A program made the translations under genes and the position numbers. The notes below the pieces were generated by a model. The model was not told where the DNA came from. It did no database searches and saw only the letters and a list, made by a program, of their open reading frames with translations. Source: Entomortierella parvispora E1425 (taxonomy: Eukaryota; Fungi; Mortierellomycota). From it: a stretch of DNA of 64,000 bases. Positions 19,270 through 28,946 of this stretch are shown here, in pieces. Every line of letters starts with the position of its first letter. Within the stretch, counting starts at the first letter, position 1. The DNA is taken from the NCBI GenBank assembly GCA_020891255.1, contig BQFW01000015.1:1550001-1614000 (forward strand), read 5' to 3'.

Positions 19270-21484
19270 TCATACACGTCTCTTGACTTCATACTCAAAC
19301 CGCGGGTCTCGATCTTGCACCTTTTTCTCACAACGCGCTCTCATGGCCACTTGTCGAACATACGCCACTAGACAGACCCAGCTGTACATCTGGGCCACGA
19401 GCACGACAATAAACACGCTGAGCCAGATCCAGGGGTTGACCAACCACTCGTCCGAAGGAAACAAGGGTCCTGCGGGTTTCAACAACGATTGAAAAGAGAG
19501 GAGCGGCGAGGGTTGAGCCTGGGAGGGGTTGGAGGTTCCGACATCGTCCTCTTCAGAGAATGGAGGAAGACGCATGTGGTCCCATTGTCCTGTTTGGTCC
19601 TTGTTTAGTTTTAACCAGTAAAGCATGGATGCCGAGGTGAGGAGAGAAACGAGCAGAAAGAGGAAATGAAAGATCCTGAAGAGGATGGACGTCAATGGAG
19701 AGGTGCGTGTTGCCCTGAGGCTGGTCAAGGCCCAGACCAAGAGCCCAAAGAGCGCGACAGCAGCCGATACAAGAAAGAATAGGGTGAACAGCGTGGCTGG
19801 AAGGGAAATCGAAGGGGAGGCTAAGAATGGGTGGTATCCACTGGCCTGGTAGACAAAGATACCAAGGACGACATTGTATGTGAACATGAATATGCAAATT
19901 AGAAGAGCCATAAGGCCAAGAGGAATAGGCCCGCTATTTGGCAATAGGAGAGTATGTGCTTTTAGTTGCGGTGGTCATCATGGGTAGCAAGCCTTGAAAA
20001 AGATCTCAGTTGTGTTACCTTGGGTTCAAGTTTCCTGATTTCTTCTTAGTGTCCTTGTTGACGTCCTTGGCATCATTGCTGTCACCCCCCTGCGAGTCTC
20101 GGGTCGGCCAAAGTTCTGTCAATGTGGACTCGGAGCCATTGAGCGTCCAACTGTCACTCAACATCGTATCCCTTCTCCCTCGGACGGATGCATCGAGGAA
20201 GGAGTTCCTCGTCGTAGCCAACGCGGGCCGCTGTAGCTGATCCTGTCTCTGGGGATCAAAGAGTGCAGGGAGCTGCCTCTGCTCCCCTCCAGAGGCACCC
20301 GCGGCGTTGTCTCTCGAGCCACCCTGACCAAAGACTCGAGTTGCAAAAGAAATCCTCTTTGATCTGGACGAAAGAGTAGGCGGCAGCGATCGATGATGTT
20401 GTTGACGTTGCAGATCCTCCCATTGTTGTTGCTGAAGAGAAAAAGTCCATTTCTGTGACCAAGCTCGATCCAAAGGCTTGATCGACGGTTGTGGCTGGTG
20501 TTGTGAGGGCTGATGTTCAGTTCCCAATAGGGGTAGCACGGATGAGGGAGATGGCATGGATCGATGTCGCCCATGGGAGCTGTTGGCCGAAGCAAGAGAG
20601 GTACGATGAACTGGCTGGAGCAAAGAGGATCGTTTCAGCATCTGTTCCTGACGCGTTTGTCTTTCCAGTCGTTCTTGACGGGCTGCGTGCTCTGTCCAAA
20701 TGGCTGCTGGCGTTGCAGAGGAGGTAGCTGTTGTGGATGCGCTATTGTTGTGAAGCATGGGCGATTGAGGTGACCGAGCGCGTGTTGATGTCGGCGTGGT
20801 GGGACTGGAAAGTGGCGAAGACCGACTGCGCCGATCCTGGTGTGATGGCTGCTGCTGAGGTCCACTTCCCTGAGCCATTGCCTTCAACTCACTGGCTGAG
20901 CCCTGAGTACGCAGTGGGTGAGCCTCTTCTCGAGACTGATCCTCCTGTTGGCGAAGATAAGTAGCTACGAAAGGAGATACTGAGCGAGCTTCAGGGGACG
21001 GTGGTTGTTCTTGCTGTTGTTCAAAGTAGGGAAGAAAGGGAACTGAACTGGTGGACGTGGGAGAATAGGGCGATGGAGGGTGGACAATTAACAAGGATGG
21101 TGGCTCAAGTTTAAAAGTCTCATCATCCAAAACCGCCTCAGCTGAAGTTGTCGCCATGGCTGCCGTCAAAGTTGTGGAGGCAGGGCGCATTGCAGAGCTG
21201 GCCTCTTCATACCCTCTTTGAGCTTCAAGTGACACAGTTGAGGAAGTGGAGTATGGCGAGGGGATGGAGGGGAGGGGTGGCAGCCGTGATGGTACATATT
21301 CTGTCCTTGGGATGTAAAGCCTTCCTGGAGGGGATGTCGACCGTTCTTTCATTCGGCGAGCGTTCGCAGGATTGAGATTGGCTTGTGCTGCAAGCAAGGT
21401 TTGAGTTCGGAGCAATTGGGCAAGATACTCTCGATCCTCAACTTCTTTGTGGGTTTCGGATCTGTTGAGGGGGCGGGTGTCCAT
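19270..21484 (-). CDS. Hypothetical membrane protein: long disordered N-terminus plus four C-terminal TM helices; intron 19934-20018 joins two ORF-track ORFs
   Basis: Donor AG|GTAACA and acceptor AATAG|C give NPS-GPIPLGL in frame. Four hydrophobic stretches lie in the 19270-19933 exon. Confidence 0.75.
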
Positions 21485-22162: not shown

Positions 22163-25100
22163 TCAAAGATAATGGATCGACAGACCTTTTGCGGCAAAGT
22201 TAAGCCCAACGCGGACCTCGGCCTTCACCTTCTTTTTCCTCACCTCCAGCGGTCCAGGCTGTCCTTGGGCGCTGTCCTTTGATGTTCGGTCCTCCTCAAC
22301 GTTATCCTCATCGGACTCGGAGTTTGCGTTATTCAGCTGCCTCATGATCTGGACCCATTGATCTCGACACTTCCAAAAATCGGCCTCATCTCCACTAGTC
22401 ATCCATTTGTCAGCGGGTACCTCAGCAAAGACCTGATTTCCTAGCTCCATCTGACATCGGACCTGAATCATCTCCATCGAAAGACTCGCTCCCAGTCTCG
22501 AGATGTTTGTTCTGTCTGTCAGAGTGATCTCAAAGGGTGGGTAGTACCATTCCAGAGTGCTGGTCTGTCGCCGCTGAGGGTCCAGATGACAGTGCGGACA
22601 AAAGAGGATGCTCGGATTCTGAGGTGAGGCCACAGCAGGTGATGAGCAGCCTTTGCAGTAGCATTGGATGAAACTGAACATGGCCTCCTGGTCGTTGTCA
22701 TCAACGTTGTAATTGCTCGTCAAGTTGTAAAAGCGCACGGCAAAGATAGTGGCCTCTTCTACAAGGGCATCACCTACACGAAGAAGTAGCAGCGTTAGGG
22801 TGGAAATTTATTATAGATAGGCTGGTATCCATTCACGGAGTTTCATGTCCTTACCCATGAACTGGTGTTCCCGCAGGGATCGAATGGATCGGAACCGCTT
22901 CAATTCGATTTGTTTGATTGAGTTCCCCCATGCGTTCTCGGACAGAGAAGCCGGGTCTCTTGCCCCATCCAAAGAAACTAATAAAGGTGGGACAGGAATG
23001 TCGTTAAAACGCTGGTTCATAGTGTCCACGAGTTTCTCCCCCCGCTGTCCGTCTATCCTTGAACCTACACACTACCGTGCCGTCATTTAGCTTGGTGAAT
23101 TTTCCAAAGAAGTTCATCAATTTTCCTGGCACGATCTTGGTTATCCACATCGGGGCATTAGAGGTACTATGTCCATGGTGCTGAAGCCCGTTAGTTTGTA
23201 TACAAGTCAACAAGGAAGCATTGGCTGTCATAGTTAAGAGCATACCTTTGTACTTTGACAAACCGTCCATTCGCCATCACTGCTCCAATTTCCCATCCGG
23301 CGCTGTCATCATTTGGGGCAATGAGCATTCGGTACACTACACTTGCGCGGATAGAAGCTCCAGACGCAACAAGCGGAAGGATACTGCCTTTGGCTGTAGG
23401 AGGTCGAGCAATCGAGGTGGATGGAGTGGTAACTGGTCCTGGCGTAGACTTGACGATCACTGATGCCGTCGTACCTGGCCCAATCTGTTGAAATCCCTGT
23501 TCCTGAGGGTGCTGCGGTGGGCTGAAAAGTGACATGGAGGGGGACAGGTAGCAAGATGGTGCTCTGGCAATACCCTTGTCTGGGTCCAGTAGATCTAGGG
23601 CTAAAACTCGCCGCTTCTCCATGAACACTTGGACAGTCGATTCGATGGTCGTGGCGGCAGGGTCATCCCGATTATCTTTAGAGCCTTTGTACCGAGACAT
23701 GACTGAGCCATCCAGTCTAGTCATCCTGGACCAAGAGCTGGAATTACCGGATATCTTGTTTCTGTACTCCTTCATCTGCAGATCTGAAAAAAAGATGGAG
23801 AGACAGACATTTCAGTGAAAGGATAGGGACGAGCATTTCTTTTCAGAAAATAAATCCACTAGATAAATACCTGTAAATAAGACAGCATCTCCTGGCTTGA
23901 AAAGATAAATCCAGTCGGCCTTTTCCCTCCAGAGGACAACCTTAAAGGACGTCGTGCTTTGATCGCAGACCGAGACCAGGACCTTCTGGAAGCTGCGACT
24001 ACTATTGCTTGTATAAGCCTTGGCAGCAATAACCTCCATGGGTTCAATGGCCATGACCAATGCGAAAATATGATAGCGACCTTCCTTCACAGGCGCCCAC
24101 TTGATTTGATCAATAGGCGTCAATTTTGGGGCGTACTCGAGGATATCTTCCGGAATGGGGATTCTATCCTTGTCGGAGATGGGCTCAGAATGGATGGGCG
24201 CTGGTTTTTCAGTTGACGCAGGTGAGGTCGATGTTGCTGGTGGAGGCGGCGGAAGAATTAAAGGTGGCGAAGTAGACTCTGAAGAAGAAGACTGTTTCAA
24301 AGTGCGTCTCATGGCATAGACCTCTGACAAAAGCTCCTGTTTTTTGCGTTCCTTCTCCCGTCTTTGCTTTTCCTGATCTTCCCGTCCACTTTGTTTTTCG
24401 TGGCCTGTTGATAATAGTTCCGTTCGGGCCACAGGCAAGGGATGATCATCCACCAAGGGTATATCGCGGCCTATTACAGGAATGATGGGCGATGTGTCGT
24501 CATACTCTGTGCTTGCACTCCCTGGGGTCTGGGACTGAGGCGGACGTGTTGTAACTTTCTCCGGCTTGCTCCCTTCCCTGTCCTGCTCCTGTTTAACGTG
24601 ATTCCATTTTGGAGATTCGCGATGACCGCTCAATGAATCGGTTGCTTTCCGCTTCTCAGAAGTATTGCCGCCTACCCCTTGATCTGCCCTAACACGCGAG
24701 TTGTTCGATTCATTATATCTCGTCCTTGTTTCTACCCTTTGCTCATCCTTGATCTCGTTTGTGGGGTGATGTGCTTTCGGGCCAGAAGGAGATACTTTTT
24801 GGTGTCCTGGAGCAAAAGTAGGGAGCCTGAATGACCTCGCAATATCTGTCAGTCTCAACTTGGGTACTGAAACTGTCACTACCGCATTCGCCATCGTCGT
24901 CGTCTTCAACGTCGCAATATGTGTAGCAAGCCGTCCCGAATTAGTCCTTTGCCTTAAGGGCGGAAGAACTGTTGTAGAGGAATACGTTTCAGTCGGCGGA
25001 GGGGGTATCGAAGTAGTAGAATTGGTAGAGGTGGTAGTTGTCGAAGAGGATGCAGGGGATACTGCTGCAAATATCCGAGAGAGTTCGCTCACAGGACGTA

Positions 25101-25905
25101 GAGGTCTCGCAGGAGATGAAGGAGCGGTGTCTTGTTTTGCTGGAGATGGTAAAGGCACATGGAATTTCTGGCGACCGGGAGAGACCAAATGTTGTGGCCG
25201 TTGTGGGGGTAGTGGCGACGGTGCTGGCTGTAAGAGTGCTCCTCGCCCGCGAGGATTTTGCGTCTTTTTACGGTGACTCTTTGAAGGTGCCCAAGCAGTG
25301 CCCATCGCAGAAGCTGTTGTCGGTGCCAGGCTGTTGAGGATGGGCTCGTCCATAACTTCTGCAACAGTGGTGCTATTGCTGTCCTCGTCACTGTCAAAGT
25401 CTGCAATGGGATCCGGGTCCAAGTCTTCCTCCAGGGTCCTGGATGGTTCCTGTGGTCTTTGATAGTGGTTTTTTAAATGACGAGTCGCGGTTTTGGCTGG
25501 TTTCCTCGACGGTTGAATTAACACAGGAGACAACAACGGGAGGTGAGGTTGGTTATCCCTTGGAGGCGGACTAAGAGAGGGTATAATAGGACTCGTCGAC
25601 TCGTCGTAGGTAGTTTGGTCCGTGTCCACGCTCAGCTGGTCCCTGTTGTTTGTAATGTTTTGGCCAGGATTCAAATCGAAATCCCACGAAGACGACGTTG
25701 TCTCTGACGATGATGTCCTAGAGAATGAGACGGACATCGTGGGGTTTGTCGGGAAGGTGGACGGTATTATATCCGAGAAATCTCTCTTCAGTCCAGGCCG
25801 GCCATCTTGTTCCTGCATATTAGACGATGCGGATGTGGATGCTGCAGATGGACGAACGCCTTTTGGGGCAGAGACTTGTTTCCGAGCAGAAGTCGGGGGC
25901 AACAT
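22163..25905 (-). CDS. SHLD2/FAM35A-like ssDNA-binding protein: long disordered N-terminus and three OB folds, the last with a CxxC...CxxC zinc ribbon; introns 23784-23870, ~23167-23245 and 22774-22854; apparent 1-nt frameshift at 23038-23043
   Basis: OB-A reads YHIFALV...VSVCDQSTTSFKVVLWREKADW...GDAVLFTDL. OB-C reads CKGC...CPHC...WYYPPFEITLTD...IQVRCQMELGNQVFAEVPAD. Both resemble my recollection of human SHLD2 motifs. Confidence 0.7.
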
Positions 25906-26196: not shown

Positions 26197-28946
26197 CTAT
26201 GGGTTCTGTGAGGAAGAAGGCAGCGTCTGAAGAAGATCAGGCGTGCTTCCCCCAGCCTTCCAAAAGTGCAGCAGCTCCTTGTACGAAGAAGGTCTCCGGA
26301 TATTCTTGGCCGGCTTTGGTCCAGCAGAAGTAGGCGAGGGAATCGGTGTCCCCGTAGATTTCAACGCGCCTTTGAAGCCGATTAGCGTCGTTTGGGAGGC
26401 CGATGATTTCTGTGGACTTGCACTATGAATATAGTTGTTTTGTTGACCGCCAGGGAGAGATTGGCTGTATGAGGACATGCTGGAGGAGGATTGCATGTTG
26501 TCAAATGTCATGGCTCGCTCGAGGTTCCGTGTATTTCCCGGTCCAGCAGAATGAGGTCCAGAGGTCCAGTTTGTGGATCCATGGGGGCGAGTTCCGTTGA
26601 CGGTGCTGTCGGTCGTGATTCGGCTTGGTCGTCTCACAGCAATACGACTCGTTCCCTGGAGAGCAGATAACGAAGAAGAAGAGGAGGATGCAGCTGTAGA
26701 GACCCCAAAGTTGTGGTTGTGTACGGTCCCTGATGGGTTGGAGCTCGGCCAAGGCAAGGGGGTTTCTGGCGACGAATCTAGGTTTCGCTGGTAAGGTCTG
26801 CGATTTTGAGTCTCCTCCTCTGACGAGGATGTCGAAAGTGGTCGCTGATAATAGATGCTCTCAGGTCGAGGCCGCTTGGAGGCCAGGACTGTCTCCAACG
26901 CCCCAAGTCGACCTTCCATCTTGTCAAAGCAGGTCGCGAGTCTAGACGAGGTCTGTTCCATGGCTCTGACGCGTTCCTGGATGCGCAGCTCAATGTCATA
27001 AAGTAGTTTGGCGTGCATCTCAGCTTCGATCCTATCCACTCTCTTGCCAAGCCTCTGGTCTGTCTCGTCCACGGTCTCGAACAACATCAATTTGGCCTCT
27101 CGGAGTTGAACCATGAGGTCTGTCAACAGTCCGTCGTTCAGCTCATGATATCTCATTCCAAATGCCTGCAGTTCCTGGCGAAGTTCTGTAATAGAGGCGT
27201 TGTCAACGACCACAGGCGGGTAAGATTGATTGAACAGAGCATTCTCAACAGCGGGTTGATATCTCTGTAGCTCTTTGCCTTGATTCAGTAGCTCGACTTG
27301 ATCCATTTCTGTCGCAATTGCCTGTTGCTCGCCGTCAAGTTCTTGGACCTATCGAATAGAATAGATGAATGAGTACAGAGAGCTCGATCGACGAGGGATG
27401 AGCGAGCTTGTACGCACCTTTGATTCAATATCCACCAATTTGTAAGAGACCATGGACTCCATTTGATCCACTCGAGAGTCCAAATCGCCCACGCGCTGAG
27501 ACACGTTCGAAAGCATTTCCTTTCGAAGCGCCAACGACCCTTGCAAATGGTGAGAGCGCTGGGATTCATTTCCTTGAGCCGCTGGTACTGCTCCAGTCTG
27601 GATCTCCAACCTCTGAACGCGCTCAGAGAGTTTCCGTTCAACCTGCAGCACGGCATCCTGAATCCTTTTGTCCAATTCGCTCTTGACCATGTCCTCGTAA
27701 ATAGGGGAAGTCACCCTTTCCTGTTGCTCCTTGGGCTGTGTCACATTGTCTCTAACACTAGTGTGGACATTACCCTCCTGCAGGGGTTGGGAGTCCATTT
27801 GACCTGTCCTACTGATTTCCTTGTCTGAACTCATAACTGCTTTATGTTTGCTCGTACCCTCGTGTTGGCCTGCTCTCTCATTATCGATGTCGTCCTCTTC
27901 CTCCCGGATAGGTCCAAGTGAATGCGCTAGAATAGAGGAAATGCTTGTAGATTGAGGAAGAGCCTGGGCGGTCGATGTAGACTCCTGTTCTCCAGCCACG
28001 GCACCCGGCGCCTTCTCGGTCTTGACTGGTTTTTTCGCCACGGGTGGATCATGAAGTTGGTATCTCTTGACAAAGATCTCGTCGTAAGGCTCTGCTTCAG
28101 CAATGTTCTCGCCATCAAAATAATGTGGATGATCGCTATTCTGCCCTGGTTCCTGACCAGAAAGGGTCCCATGTGCCTTCCCTGTGTGTGTGCCTTTTGT
28201 GTTCTTGAAAGCGCGACGCGCCCCTAATTTTCCCAAAAAAAAAAAAAAAAAAAAAAAAAACAGGGCATCAACAACGGACGTAATCGTCAACTGACCAAGG
28301 GCATGGCATGCAGGGCTGTTGAAACAGGTTCTTCTTTCTTACCAGACACTGGCGAGAGATAGGATAGATCCTCTTGCTCCTCATTCTGTGCACGCTCAAA
28401 GTCAAGGCGGTCGCGGGTATGATGTTCATACGAGTCGCTTCGGGCCAGTCTAGAGTTCACATTCATGGCCCCGTCCAAGAACGAGGGCGAGGGCTGGAGG
28501 CGACGGGCTTTCTCGAGAGCCTCAGTATCGGAATCGACCTCGTCCTCTTCCTCCTCGATGGCATCTCCCTCCTCGTATTCATAGTCTTGATCACTGTCGC
28601 TCTCGTCAAAGTAGACGGGTTCTGTGTGAATGGGCAGCAAACGAATAAAGGGCTTTGGACCCTCGCCTTCCAGAGGCGATTGGATCGGGGCAGAGACTGG
28701 GGTAGAGGCAATGGTGGACGACGAACGAGGTCCACCAGCGGGTATGGAGGCTACGGCATTGGCAATCCCCGCAAGAGTCAGATTGGCGCTCGAGTTGTTA
28801 TGCACAGTTCCATTCCGTTTGAGGTCTCGATTGAGCAACAGGTTGGTCGTCGAGAGAGACAGTGAGTTTTGACGCTGGATCTGTCGATTTGTCTCGTTGT
28901 AGTGGCGTTTGTGGTAGGGTTCTTCGACGCTCTGGTTTTGACCCAT
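26197..28946 (-). CDS. Hypothetical coiled-coil protein with N-terminal MGQNQS motif, 3 exons
   Basis: Three ORF-track ORFs are joined by in-frame GT-AG introns (first intron has a T26 tract on the coding strand). Two heptad-rich regions are present. Confidence 0.8.

Follow-up and report, generated by a model that had tools for sequence, protein, structure and literature searches.

Is SHLD2, the subunit through which the shieldin complex grips DNA, confined to vertebrates, or does an early-diverging fungus also encode one? SHLD1-3 have been reported as undetectable outside vertebrates (PMC11526942) and as absent from yeast, fly and worm (PMC11616998), and this stated absence has led to searches for functional substitutes, among them Cryptococcus Njf1 and budding-yeast Rev7-MRX. 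In the literature on SHLD2 in fungi, invertebrates or plants we found no description of a non-vertebrate SHLD2. The original prediction, which described shieldin as a vertebrate innovation in agreement with both of the above papers, nevertheless placed a SHLD2-like gene in a 64,000-nt stretch of DNA from Entomortierella parvispora (the window, to which all positions below refer; every feature lies on the minus strand).

The gene lies where it was predicted, at 22163-25905, and is spliced. It runs from an ATG at 25905 to the end of the stop codon at 22163 in five exons (25905-23871, 23783-23246, 23166-23069, 22977-22855 and 22773-22163), with 1134 codons plus the stop, and the spliced translation is letter-for-letter the deposited 1134-aa protein EMPS_11159 (P0001). 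The four introns (23870-23784, 23245-23167, 23068-22978 and 22854-22774) are 87, 79, 91 and 81 nt long, and all have GT..AG ends. A read-through of exon 3 with a frameshift at a six-G run near 23045 was considered and rejected, the deposited model having a 91-nt GTAGGT..TAG intron at 23068-22978. Exons and introns are collinear with those of a Mortierella alpina locus (L001), where the introns have the same phases and a canonical GTAAGT donor stands at the place of the 23068-22978 intron. In addition, the gene models of 16 relatives align across the middle exons and their junctions (alignment A1). Since the M. alpina introns are collinear and the relatives' models align through these exons, no frameshift is required in EMPS_11159 and, as judged from its sequence, the gene is intact. 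The deposited model and the collinear orthologues also join the exons of the second and third OB domains (OB-B and OB-C) to the first (OB-A), as had been predicted. The adjoining ORFs at 20015-21484 and 26197-27306, both also on the minus strand, carry no Pfam domain and are uninformative as context.

A disordered N-terminus of ~600 aa followed by three OB domains had been foreseen, and both composition and AlphaFold2 modelling bear this out. Exon 1 (23871-25905) encodes aa 1-678 plus one base, comprising the disordered Pro/Ser/Thr-rich region as well as the first two thirds of OB-A; Pro, Ser and Thr make up 37% of the first ~600 aa (13%, 13% and 10%, respectively). Three short stretches of this region are conserved in an N-terminal alignment of 16 Mortierellomycota proteins: aa 39-57 (25735-25791), which read LKRDFSDIIPSTFPTNPTM and have the family consensus LKRDxSxIIPSxIPTQ; an acidic motif at aa 161-176 (25378-25425; consensus DxDPIxDFDxSDD); and a basic motif at aa 262-278 (25072-25122; consensus SPxKRLRPVSE). 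The PxxxPT core of the first resembles in sequence the REV7-binding motif, defined as PXXXpP (PMC7181697).

The AlphaFold2 models have three confident OB folds, at aa ~610-702, 821-919 and 931-1134; for aa 590-1134 the mean pLDDT is 79.9, with OB cores >90 (models 80-81). EMPS_11159 has three tandem RPA70-like C-terminal OB folds behind a long disordered region. OB-A (aa 610-702; 23713-24078), whose strands have pLDDT >90, is split by intron 1 (23870-23784). Behind it come a helix that is conserved in alignment A1 and present in the AlphaFold2 model (aa 720-738; 23605-23661) and a linker modelled with low confidence (aa 759-814; 23544-23377). OB-B (aa 821-919; 22892-23358) is encoded in exons 2 to 4, with the introns 23245-23167 and 23068-22978 inside it, and has the conserved block SIRAxVVYxML...GWEIGAV in alignment A1. 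It is a generic SSB/PriB-type OB fold (Z ~10), and by VIA-align OB-B/C match only such folds, a result that is not discriminating. OB-C (aa 931-1134; 22166-22858), interrupted by the intron 22854-22774, resembles RPA70 DBD-C in its modelled OB fold and has a long C-terminal helix as well as two closing strands. Within it, C971, C974, C990 and C993 form a Cys4 zinc ribbon (22589-22657), and each of these cysteines is conserved to at least 90% in a 25-sequence alignment (A3). The zinc ribbon CKGC...CPHC had been predicted correctly, although with a spacing of x16, where we count x15 (CKGC-x15-CPHC). The other strings that had been quoted from the protein, namely VSVCDQSTTSFKVVLWREKADW...GDAVLFT|DL (which reads across intron 1), WYYPPFEITLTD and IQVRCQMELGNQVFAEVPAD, are all present.

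Evidence on the identity of the protein comes first from Pfam. OB-A matches the first OB domain of SHLD2 (PF21669, SHLD2_OB1) over aa 606-704, scoring 49.4-51.1 bits (cut-off 26; E 5e-13 to 1e-13), and the part of OB-A encoded in exon 1 scores 35.3 bits on its own. SHLD2_OB1 ranks first among the families in 26 of the 39 relatives or fragments scanned, these 26 being all those taken to include OB-A, and also in every distant relative scanned singly; its gathering score is exceeded in every relative tested. The other two SHLD2 models behave differently. The C-terminal model (PF15793, SHLD2_C) finds nothing at E<=1 across the 39 members scanned, and the second-OB model (PF22779, OB_SHLD2_2nd) reaches 13-15 bits against a cut-off of 27, its weak match in EMPS_11159 lying on OB-A and not on OB-B; in the protist relative P0036, a weak match (E 0.022) is found at the second OB position.

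By sequence comparison, the family is conserved across Mortierellomycota, where it is present in many genera. An exhaustive phmmer search returned 38 representatives out of 1.84 billion at E<1e-3, with no vertebrate protein and no RPA1 at that threshold. When alignments A2 and A4 were used in word-indexed searches, nothing beyond the fungal family or the query came back, and no animal SHLD2. Weaker relatives of OB-A occur in chytrids, Neocallimastigomycota and protists. When the Mortierellomycota profile was compared by hhalign with three such distant relatives (P0036, P0039 and P0040), OB-A was aligned with a probability of 94-98%, and OB-B and OB-C were not aligned.

Structural comparison extends the likeness to the whole OB array. 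In a Foldseek search of the Swiss-Prot AlphaFold models, the first three ranks are held by SHLD2 of mouse (Q3UEN2), orangutan and human (Q86V20) (E 5.9e-18, 4.3e-17 and 3.6e-14, respectively), in alignments of 13-14% identity that cover the entire three-OB span. Next come Teb1 (rank 4, 6.3e-13), RPA70 (6e-13) and POT1 (8e-12). The global TM-scores of these matches stay low (0.15-0.27), a consequence of the flexible arrangement of the three domains. Among the AlphaFold clusters, ranks 1-3 and 5 are SHLD2-type and stand ahead of the RPA clusters. A7SBY0, titled 'Shieldin complex subunit 2 C-terminal domain-containing protein', and A0A0D2WTK9, titled '...first OB fold domain-containing protein', are both among the top five, C1E799 is another hit of this search, and from their accession prefixes we take the SHLD2-type matches to come from Nematostella, Capsaspora and Micromonas. 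An ESM-Atlas shape search with the whole OB region lists the chordate SHLD2 cluster first, and the same cluster is the closest shape when OB-B and OB-C are modelled on their own (TM by query 0.45 over 198 residues). A language-model feature search gave another order, with POT1, MEIOB/hold'em, CDC24-OB and a CTC1/SHLD2_C cluster ranked above the chordate SHLD2 cluster, which is weak counter-evidence to a SHLD2 identity. It had been set beforehand that a lead of RPA1, MEIOB, POT1 or CTC1 would count against the SHLD2-like identity; in both Pfam and Foldseek, SHLD2 leads. From these results, EMPS_11159 is probably a fungal member of the SHLD2 (FAM35A) family.

The alternative that fares best is that EMPS_11159 is a lineage-specific, RPA70-like OB-array paralogue, a generic single-stranded DNA binder without specific kinship to SHLD2, and that its SHLD2_OB1 match reflects features common to RPA-type OB folds. 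SHLD2_OB1 is indeed not fully specific: it is carried by 76% of the members of an archaeal RFA1-like Atlas cluster. The RPA model REPA_OB_2 (PF16900) is the second-best Pfam family, found in 24 of the 39 members (best 1e-08), and two of the relatives scanned singly exceed its cut-off of 27 (33.4 and 33.7 bits). The missing SHLD2_C and OB_SHLD2_2nd matches also fit such a paralogue. However, EMPS_11159 itself reaches only 16.8-18.1 bits with REPA_OB_2 and has no match to Rep_fac-A_C (PF08646), and in all nine proteins scanned singly REPA_OB_2 scores below SHLD2_OB1, usually by 15-50 bits and at the least by 1.4 bits. The best-matching solved structures are those of RPA70 (4gop_C, 1e-11; 9pd4_N; and, for OB-C, the DBD-C trimerization core 1l1o_C with a Foldseek TMt of 0.55). 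Likewise, a search of PDB sequences with the family profile gave only marginal RPA and POT1 matches (E 0.0018 to 0.1), the best being an archaeal RPA-related protein at 0.0018. No SHLD2 OB-domain structure was matched by the profile and the PDB apparently holds none, so a lead of RPA70 among solved structures is to be expected. Among the Swiss-Prot models, where SHLD2 is represented, every RPA70 lies four to five E-value orders behind the three SHLD2 entries, with an identity of 9-11% against 13-14%. The failure of exhaustive phmmer to return RPA1 at E<1e-3 argues in the same direction, and of the N-terminal DBD-F domain of RPA70 there is no sign, the 600-aa disordered region occupying that position. 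We therefore regard a generic RPA70-like paralogue as unlikely.

A telomere end-binding protein like POT1, CTC1 or Teb1, one that would cap or process the telomeric 3' overhang and would not be a break-repair factor, is less probable still. Such a role could be argued from the language-model search, in which POT1 clusters come first (0.93 and 0.92) with the CTC1/SHLD2_C cluster close behind, and from the places of Teb1 and POT1 in the Swiss-Prot ranking given above. OB-B and OB-C are matched by CTC1 chains at 2.6e-05, and a zinc site in the last OB fold is also present in POT1 and CTC1. The Pfam POT1 model (PF02765) appears below threshold in nine members (best 5.4e-06), but its cut-off of 29 bits is not reached in any member scanned singly (best 25.9 bits), and EMPS_11159 has no match to it. 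Moreover, the OB folds of POT1 are N-terminal, the Foldseek alignments starting from residue 11 in mouse and human POT1, whereas those of EMPS_11159 start at ~aa 610, and SHLD2 is structurally ahead of POT1, CTC1 and Teb1 alike. A MEIOB- or RADX-like specialised single-stranded DNA binder, regulating recombinases in meiosis or at replication forks, is very improbable: MEIOB and hold'em do appear among the Foldseek matches (~1e-10, ranks 26 and 29) and stand high in the language-model search, and OB_MEIOB_N is weakly matched in 2 of the 39 members, but these scores are much weaker than those of SHLD2 and RPA70, no profile match is above threshold, and the MEIOB entries and clusters are listed at ~430-490 aa, too short to accommodate a long disordered N-terminus as well.

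If EMPS_11159 is a SHLD2 homologue, its OB array would bind single-stranded DNA at resected ends, as RPA70 and vertebrate SHLD2 do, while the N-terminal motifs would tether the protein to its partners. The likeliest partner would be the HORMA protein Rev7, contacted through the IIPSxIPT motif, possibly together with the CST/polymerase fill-in machinery. EMPS_11159 would in that case restrain resection and tip repair towards end joining; alternatively, it could protect DNA ends at telomeres or in meiosis. Taken further, SHLD2 could be an ancient eukaryotic end-protection factor, dating at least to the ancestor shared by animals and fungi, with a later loss in the Dikarya model yeasts. Mortierellomycota might then retain a minimal shieldin, in which the IIPSxIPT motif is captured directly by the Rev7 seatbelt without SHLD3 and the three OB folds hold the resected strand. 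We offer this larger scenario tentatively, as a possibility that we think less likely than not.

The vertebrate-only picture would be altered if an early-diverging phylum of fungi has an intact and conserved homologue of SHLD2. The Mortierellomycota homologue, the relatives in chytrids, Neocallimastigomycota and protists, and the SHLD2-type folds presumably from Nematostella, Capsaspora and Micromonas together suggest that the single-stranded DNA-binding core of shieldin is old and has been repeatedly lost. Our claim to novelty is tempered because UniRef and some NCBI records already give these proteins a SHLD2 label by automatic annotation. EMPS_11159 itself is tagged with a SHLD2 domain in sequence databases, which also hold other non-vertebrate SHLD2-domain proteins. 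What is new is how the match is interpreted, and that this reading is at odds with the literature; the domain match itself is not new. Mortierella species are transformable, and a pre-animal origin of 53BP1/Rev7-linked end protection could accordingly be tested by knock-out and pull-down. Should the ancient minimal-shieldin reading be true, these fungi would offer a transformable system for the origin of shieldin and its core mechanism.

Among known systems, the closest parallel is vertebrate SHLD2/FAM35A, with which EMPS_11159 shares the order of its parts (an N-terminal short motif, a long disordered region and three C-terminal RPA70-like OB folds), the above-cut-off profile match of OB-A, and the best structural neighbourhood, both for the whole OB array and for OB-B/C alone. 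The two differ in that identity is only 13-14% in structural alignments and that the second-OB and C-terminal Pfam models are unmatched, and we know of no SHLD1 or SHLD3 partner in fungi. SHLD2 contacts REV7 (with SHLD3) by its N-terminus and SHLD1 by its C-terminus, and acts downstream of 53BP1-RIF1. In its published description, SHLD2 has an interaction motif at the N-terminus and an RPA70-like OB domain at the C-terminus, with a disordered linker between them (PMC7181697). In human SHLD2, aa 1-60 form a beta-strand REV7/SHLD3-interacting module (PMC7181697), whereas the IIPSxIPTQ motif of EMPS_11159 resembles the seatbelt-type PXXXpP motif and is not obviously that module. With DBDs A, B and C of RPA70/Rfa1, the EMPS_11159 model shares the tandem OB folds and the zinc ribbon in the last of them, and RPA70 gives the best solved-structure match, but the RPA Pfam models stay below cut-off or, as with Rep_fac-A_C, find no match, and DBD-F leaves no sign. 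POT1, CTC1 and Teb1, which are also multi-OB binders of single-stranded ends, show significant structural similarity, but rank below SHLD2 and RPA70, have sub-threshold Pfam matches and differ in domain order. Finally, Njf1 of Cryptococcus neoformans is a 'shieldin-like' NHEJ factor proposed to promote end joining with Rev7, whose seatbelt is predicted to capture an Njf1 peptide; it was reported to be detectable only in basidiomycetes, and not as a SHLD2 homologue (PMC11526942). As described, that peptide parallels the PxxxPT-type motif of EMPS_11159, whereas the Mortierellomycota protein has an apparently recognisable homology to SHLD2.

The SHLD2-like gene occupies positions 25905 to 22163 on the minus strand of the window, as originally predicted. 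A long first ORF (23812-25905, minus strand) has a GT donor just past GDAVLFT, and frame comparison showed coding-looking pieces in each of the three reading frames midway through the gene. Searched as a protein query, the portion of OB-A encoded by exon 1 retrieved a 100% identical deposited protein of 1134 aa (P0001), recorded as 'hypothetical protein EMPS_11159 [Entomortierella parvispora]' and given a UniRef name starting 'Shieldin complex subunit 2'. Translation of five minus-strand exons (25905-23871, 23783-23246, 23166-23069, 22977-22855 and 22773-22163), separated by GT..AG introns of 87, 79, 91 and 81 nt, reproduces this protein exactly. At the Mortierella alpina locus L001 (JAABKD010000183.1), the introns match in position and phase, one having the canonical GTAAGT donor, and 16 relatives align across the junctions of the small middle exons. 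From this comparison with relatives, which is the sole basis of the splice model, the two small middle exons appear genuine rather than an annotation artefact, and OB-A is probably joined to OB-B and OB-C, as it also is in the deposited model.

M. alpina's own deposited model, P0002 (EC968_002879, 859 aa), has splicing errors at OB-B (L001:5040-5420) that put part of this region out of frame ('...RHSARKINELLWK...'). Spliced correctly, the M. alpina exons are collinear with those of E. parvispora; another M. alpina entry, P0057, is longer (929 aa). The E. parvispora gene is flanked on the same minus strand by two Ser/Pro/Gln-rich ORFs, at 20015-21484 (489 aa) and 26197-27306 (369 aa), neither of which matches a Pfam family at E<=0.01.

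EMPS_11159 is intact and conserved, with three RPA70-type OB folds, a Cys4 ribbon and a disordered N-terminal region containing short conserved motifs. Its first 600 residues are 37% Pro+Ser+Thr, in keeping with the disordered N-terminus of about 600 aa originally proposed. Modelled with AlphaFold2 from an alignment of 39 rows, aa 590-1134 (mean pLDDT 79.9) fold into the expected three OB barrels, at about aa 610-702 (OB-A), 821-919 (OB-B) and 931-1134 (OB-C), with a helix and a low-confidence linker separating OB-A from OB-B; when aa 815-1134 were modelled by themselves, pLDDT was 81.4 and pTM 0.79. All of the sequence strings quoted in the original prediction occur in the protein, including the zinc-ribbon cysteines, which are spaced CKGC-x15-CPHC rather than x16. 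Conservation across 25 aligned sequences, protist relatives among them, is at least 90% for the four ribbon cysteines, one tryptophan and one aspartate.

Among Pfam models, the first OB fold of SHLD2 (SHLD2_OB1, PF21669) matched aa 606-704 with 49.4 bits (E 5e-13; curated cut-off 26), REPA_OB_2 reached 16.8 bits, below its cut-off of 27, and the POT1 model had no match in EMPS_11159. Of 39 relatives and fragments scanned, 26 had a match to SHLD2_OB1 (best E 4e-19), and these are all the ones taken to contain OB-A; 24 matched REPA_OB_2 (best 1e-08) and nine POT1 (best 5e-06). In seven members scanned singly, SHLD2_OB1 came first and above its cut-off every time, at 34-66 bits. The remaining SHLD2 models were not matched: SHLD2_C (PF15793) found nothing at E<=1 in the 39 relatives and fragments, and OB_SHLD2_2nd (PF22779) reached only about 14 bits and falls on the wrong domain of EMPS_11159. 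SHLD2_OB1 is also imperfectly specific, cross-matching RPA-type OB folds, since 76% of the members of an archaeal (Nitrososphaerota) RFA1-like ESM-Atlas cluster carry it; a match to it is not in itself proof of SHLD2.

When the OB region was searched with Foldseek against the Swiss-Prot AlphaFold models, the top three matches were SHLD2 of mouse (5.9e-18), orangutan (4.3e-17) and human (3.6e-14), each aligning model residues 5-543 with the SHLD2 OB region at 13-14% identity. SHLD2 thus ranked ahead of RPA70, POT1 and MEIOB, as anticipated: Teb1 and fission-yeast Rfa1 followed at 6.3e-13, then other RPA70s (~1e-12 to 1e-11), POT1 (8e-12) and MEIOB (2e-10). The loose arrangement of the three domains keeps global TM-scores low. 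In the AlphaFold clusters, ranks 1 and 3 were two entries without a protein name, presumably from Callorhinchus and Xenopus by accession prefix. RPA clusters began at 1e-12, behind A7SBY0 ('Shieldin complex subunit 2 C-terminal domain-containing protein', 1.2e-18), C1E799 (3.2e-16) and A0A0D2WTK9 ('Shieldin complex subunit 2 first OB fold domain-containing protein', 8.8e-14), whose prefixes we take to denote the cnidarian Nematostella, the green alga Micromonas and the filasterean Capsaspora. These ranks suggest a wide, patchy eukaryotic spread of SHLD2-like proteins. In ESM-Atlas shape searches, the chordate SHLD2 cluster headed the list both with the complete OB region as query and with just OB-B and OB-C (TM by query 0.45 over 198 aligned residues), so the modelled C-terminal half points to SHLD2 without OB-A and despite the failure of its Pfam models. 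SHLD2 is the nearest known family.

That EMPS_11159 is instead a lineage-specific RPA70-like paralogue would fit the REPA_OB_2 matches among its relatives and the best solved structures, RPA70 (4gop_C at 1e-11; DBD-C core 1l1o_C, TMt 0.55). This last result is expected, since the SHLD2 C-terminus is described as RPA70-like (PMC7181697) and the PDB seemingly contains no SHLD2 OB-domain chain; RPA follows SHLD2 in both Foldseek searches of predicted models, and we consider a paralogue unlikely. A telomere protein of the POT1, CTC1 or Teb1 type is more improbable still: CTC1, POT1 and the ciliate telomere-end-binding protein alpha subunit come after RPA70 among solved structures, and Teb1 and POT1 rank below SHLD2 among the Swiss-Prot models. 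A language-model feature search placed POT1, MEIOB/hold'em, CDC24-OB and a mixed CTC1/SHLD2_C cluster above the chordate SHLD2 cluster, an order that counts weakly against the SHLD2 assignment. A MEIOB- or RADX-like regulator shares in that result, has MEIOB well down the Swiss-Prot ranks and is very improbable. On balance, EMPS_11159 is probably a genuine SHLD2-family member.

Searched exhaustively with phmmer, 1.84 billion representatives yielded 38 proteins at E<1e-3. The strong matches are without exception from Mortierellomycota, with genera including Mortierella, Entomortierella, Dissophora, Modicella, Podila, Gryganskiella, Gamsiella, Haplosporangium, Lobosporangium, Benniella, Linnemannia and Actinomortierella, and the NCBI records of several are named 'Shieldin complex subunit 2'. 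Weak matches, to OB-A only, came from the chytrid Phlyctochytrium arcticum, the Neocallimastigomycota member Anaeromyces robustus, Plasmodiophora brassicae, a marine protist transcript and one further eukaryote; the best Pfam family in each is SHLD2_OB1, and hhalign linked them to the fungal profile over OB-A only.

An N-terminal alignment of 16 Mortierellomycota proteins revealed conserved islands amid variable sequence: LKRDxSxIIPSxIPTQ (aa 39-57; 25735-25791, minus strand), DxDPIxDFDxSDD (aa 161-176; 25378-25425, minus strand), SPxKRLRPVSE (aa 262-278; 25072-25122, minus strand), PPxPLGPxLxxIAxE and, directly preceding OB-A, IPLPxxILEYAxKLTPID. Within the first, the PxxxPT core of IIPSxIPT follows two hydrophobic residues. 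Its resemblance to the REV7-binding motif, defined as PXXXpP (PMC7181697), makes it a putative REV7-binding site, as a lead only. The OB array may bind ssDNA at resected ends and the N-terminal motifs might recruit partners, most plausibly Rev7, so that EMPS_11159 would be an end-protection scaffold favouring end joining or fill-in. That it both belongs to the SHLD2 family and works in a Rev7-linked shieldin-like pathway is a tentative and rather doubtful proposition.

Shieldin subunits other than Rev7 are described as not detectable outside vertebrates (PMC11526942), in agreement with the original view of shieldin as a vertebrate feature, and as missing from yeast, fly and worm (PMC11616998). 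The Rev7-binding 'shieldin-like' factor Njf1 is reported as detectable only in basidiomycetes (PMC11526942). Our literature search found no description of a fungal or other non-vertebrate SHLD2, and a wide eukaryotic distribution of SHLD2-like proteins is absent from the repair literature. Because databases already attach the SHLD2 domain name to EMPS_11159 and its relatives, by automatic annotation, this is not a new kind of system; the interest of a fungal SHLD2-like gene is that it runs counter to what the field commonly states and would allow the ancestry of shieldin to be tested in a fungus.
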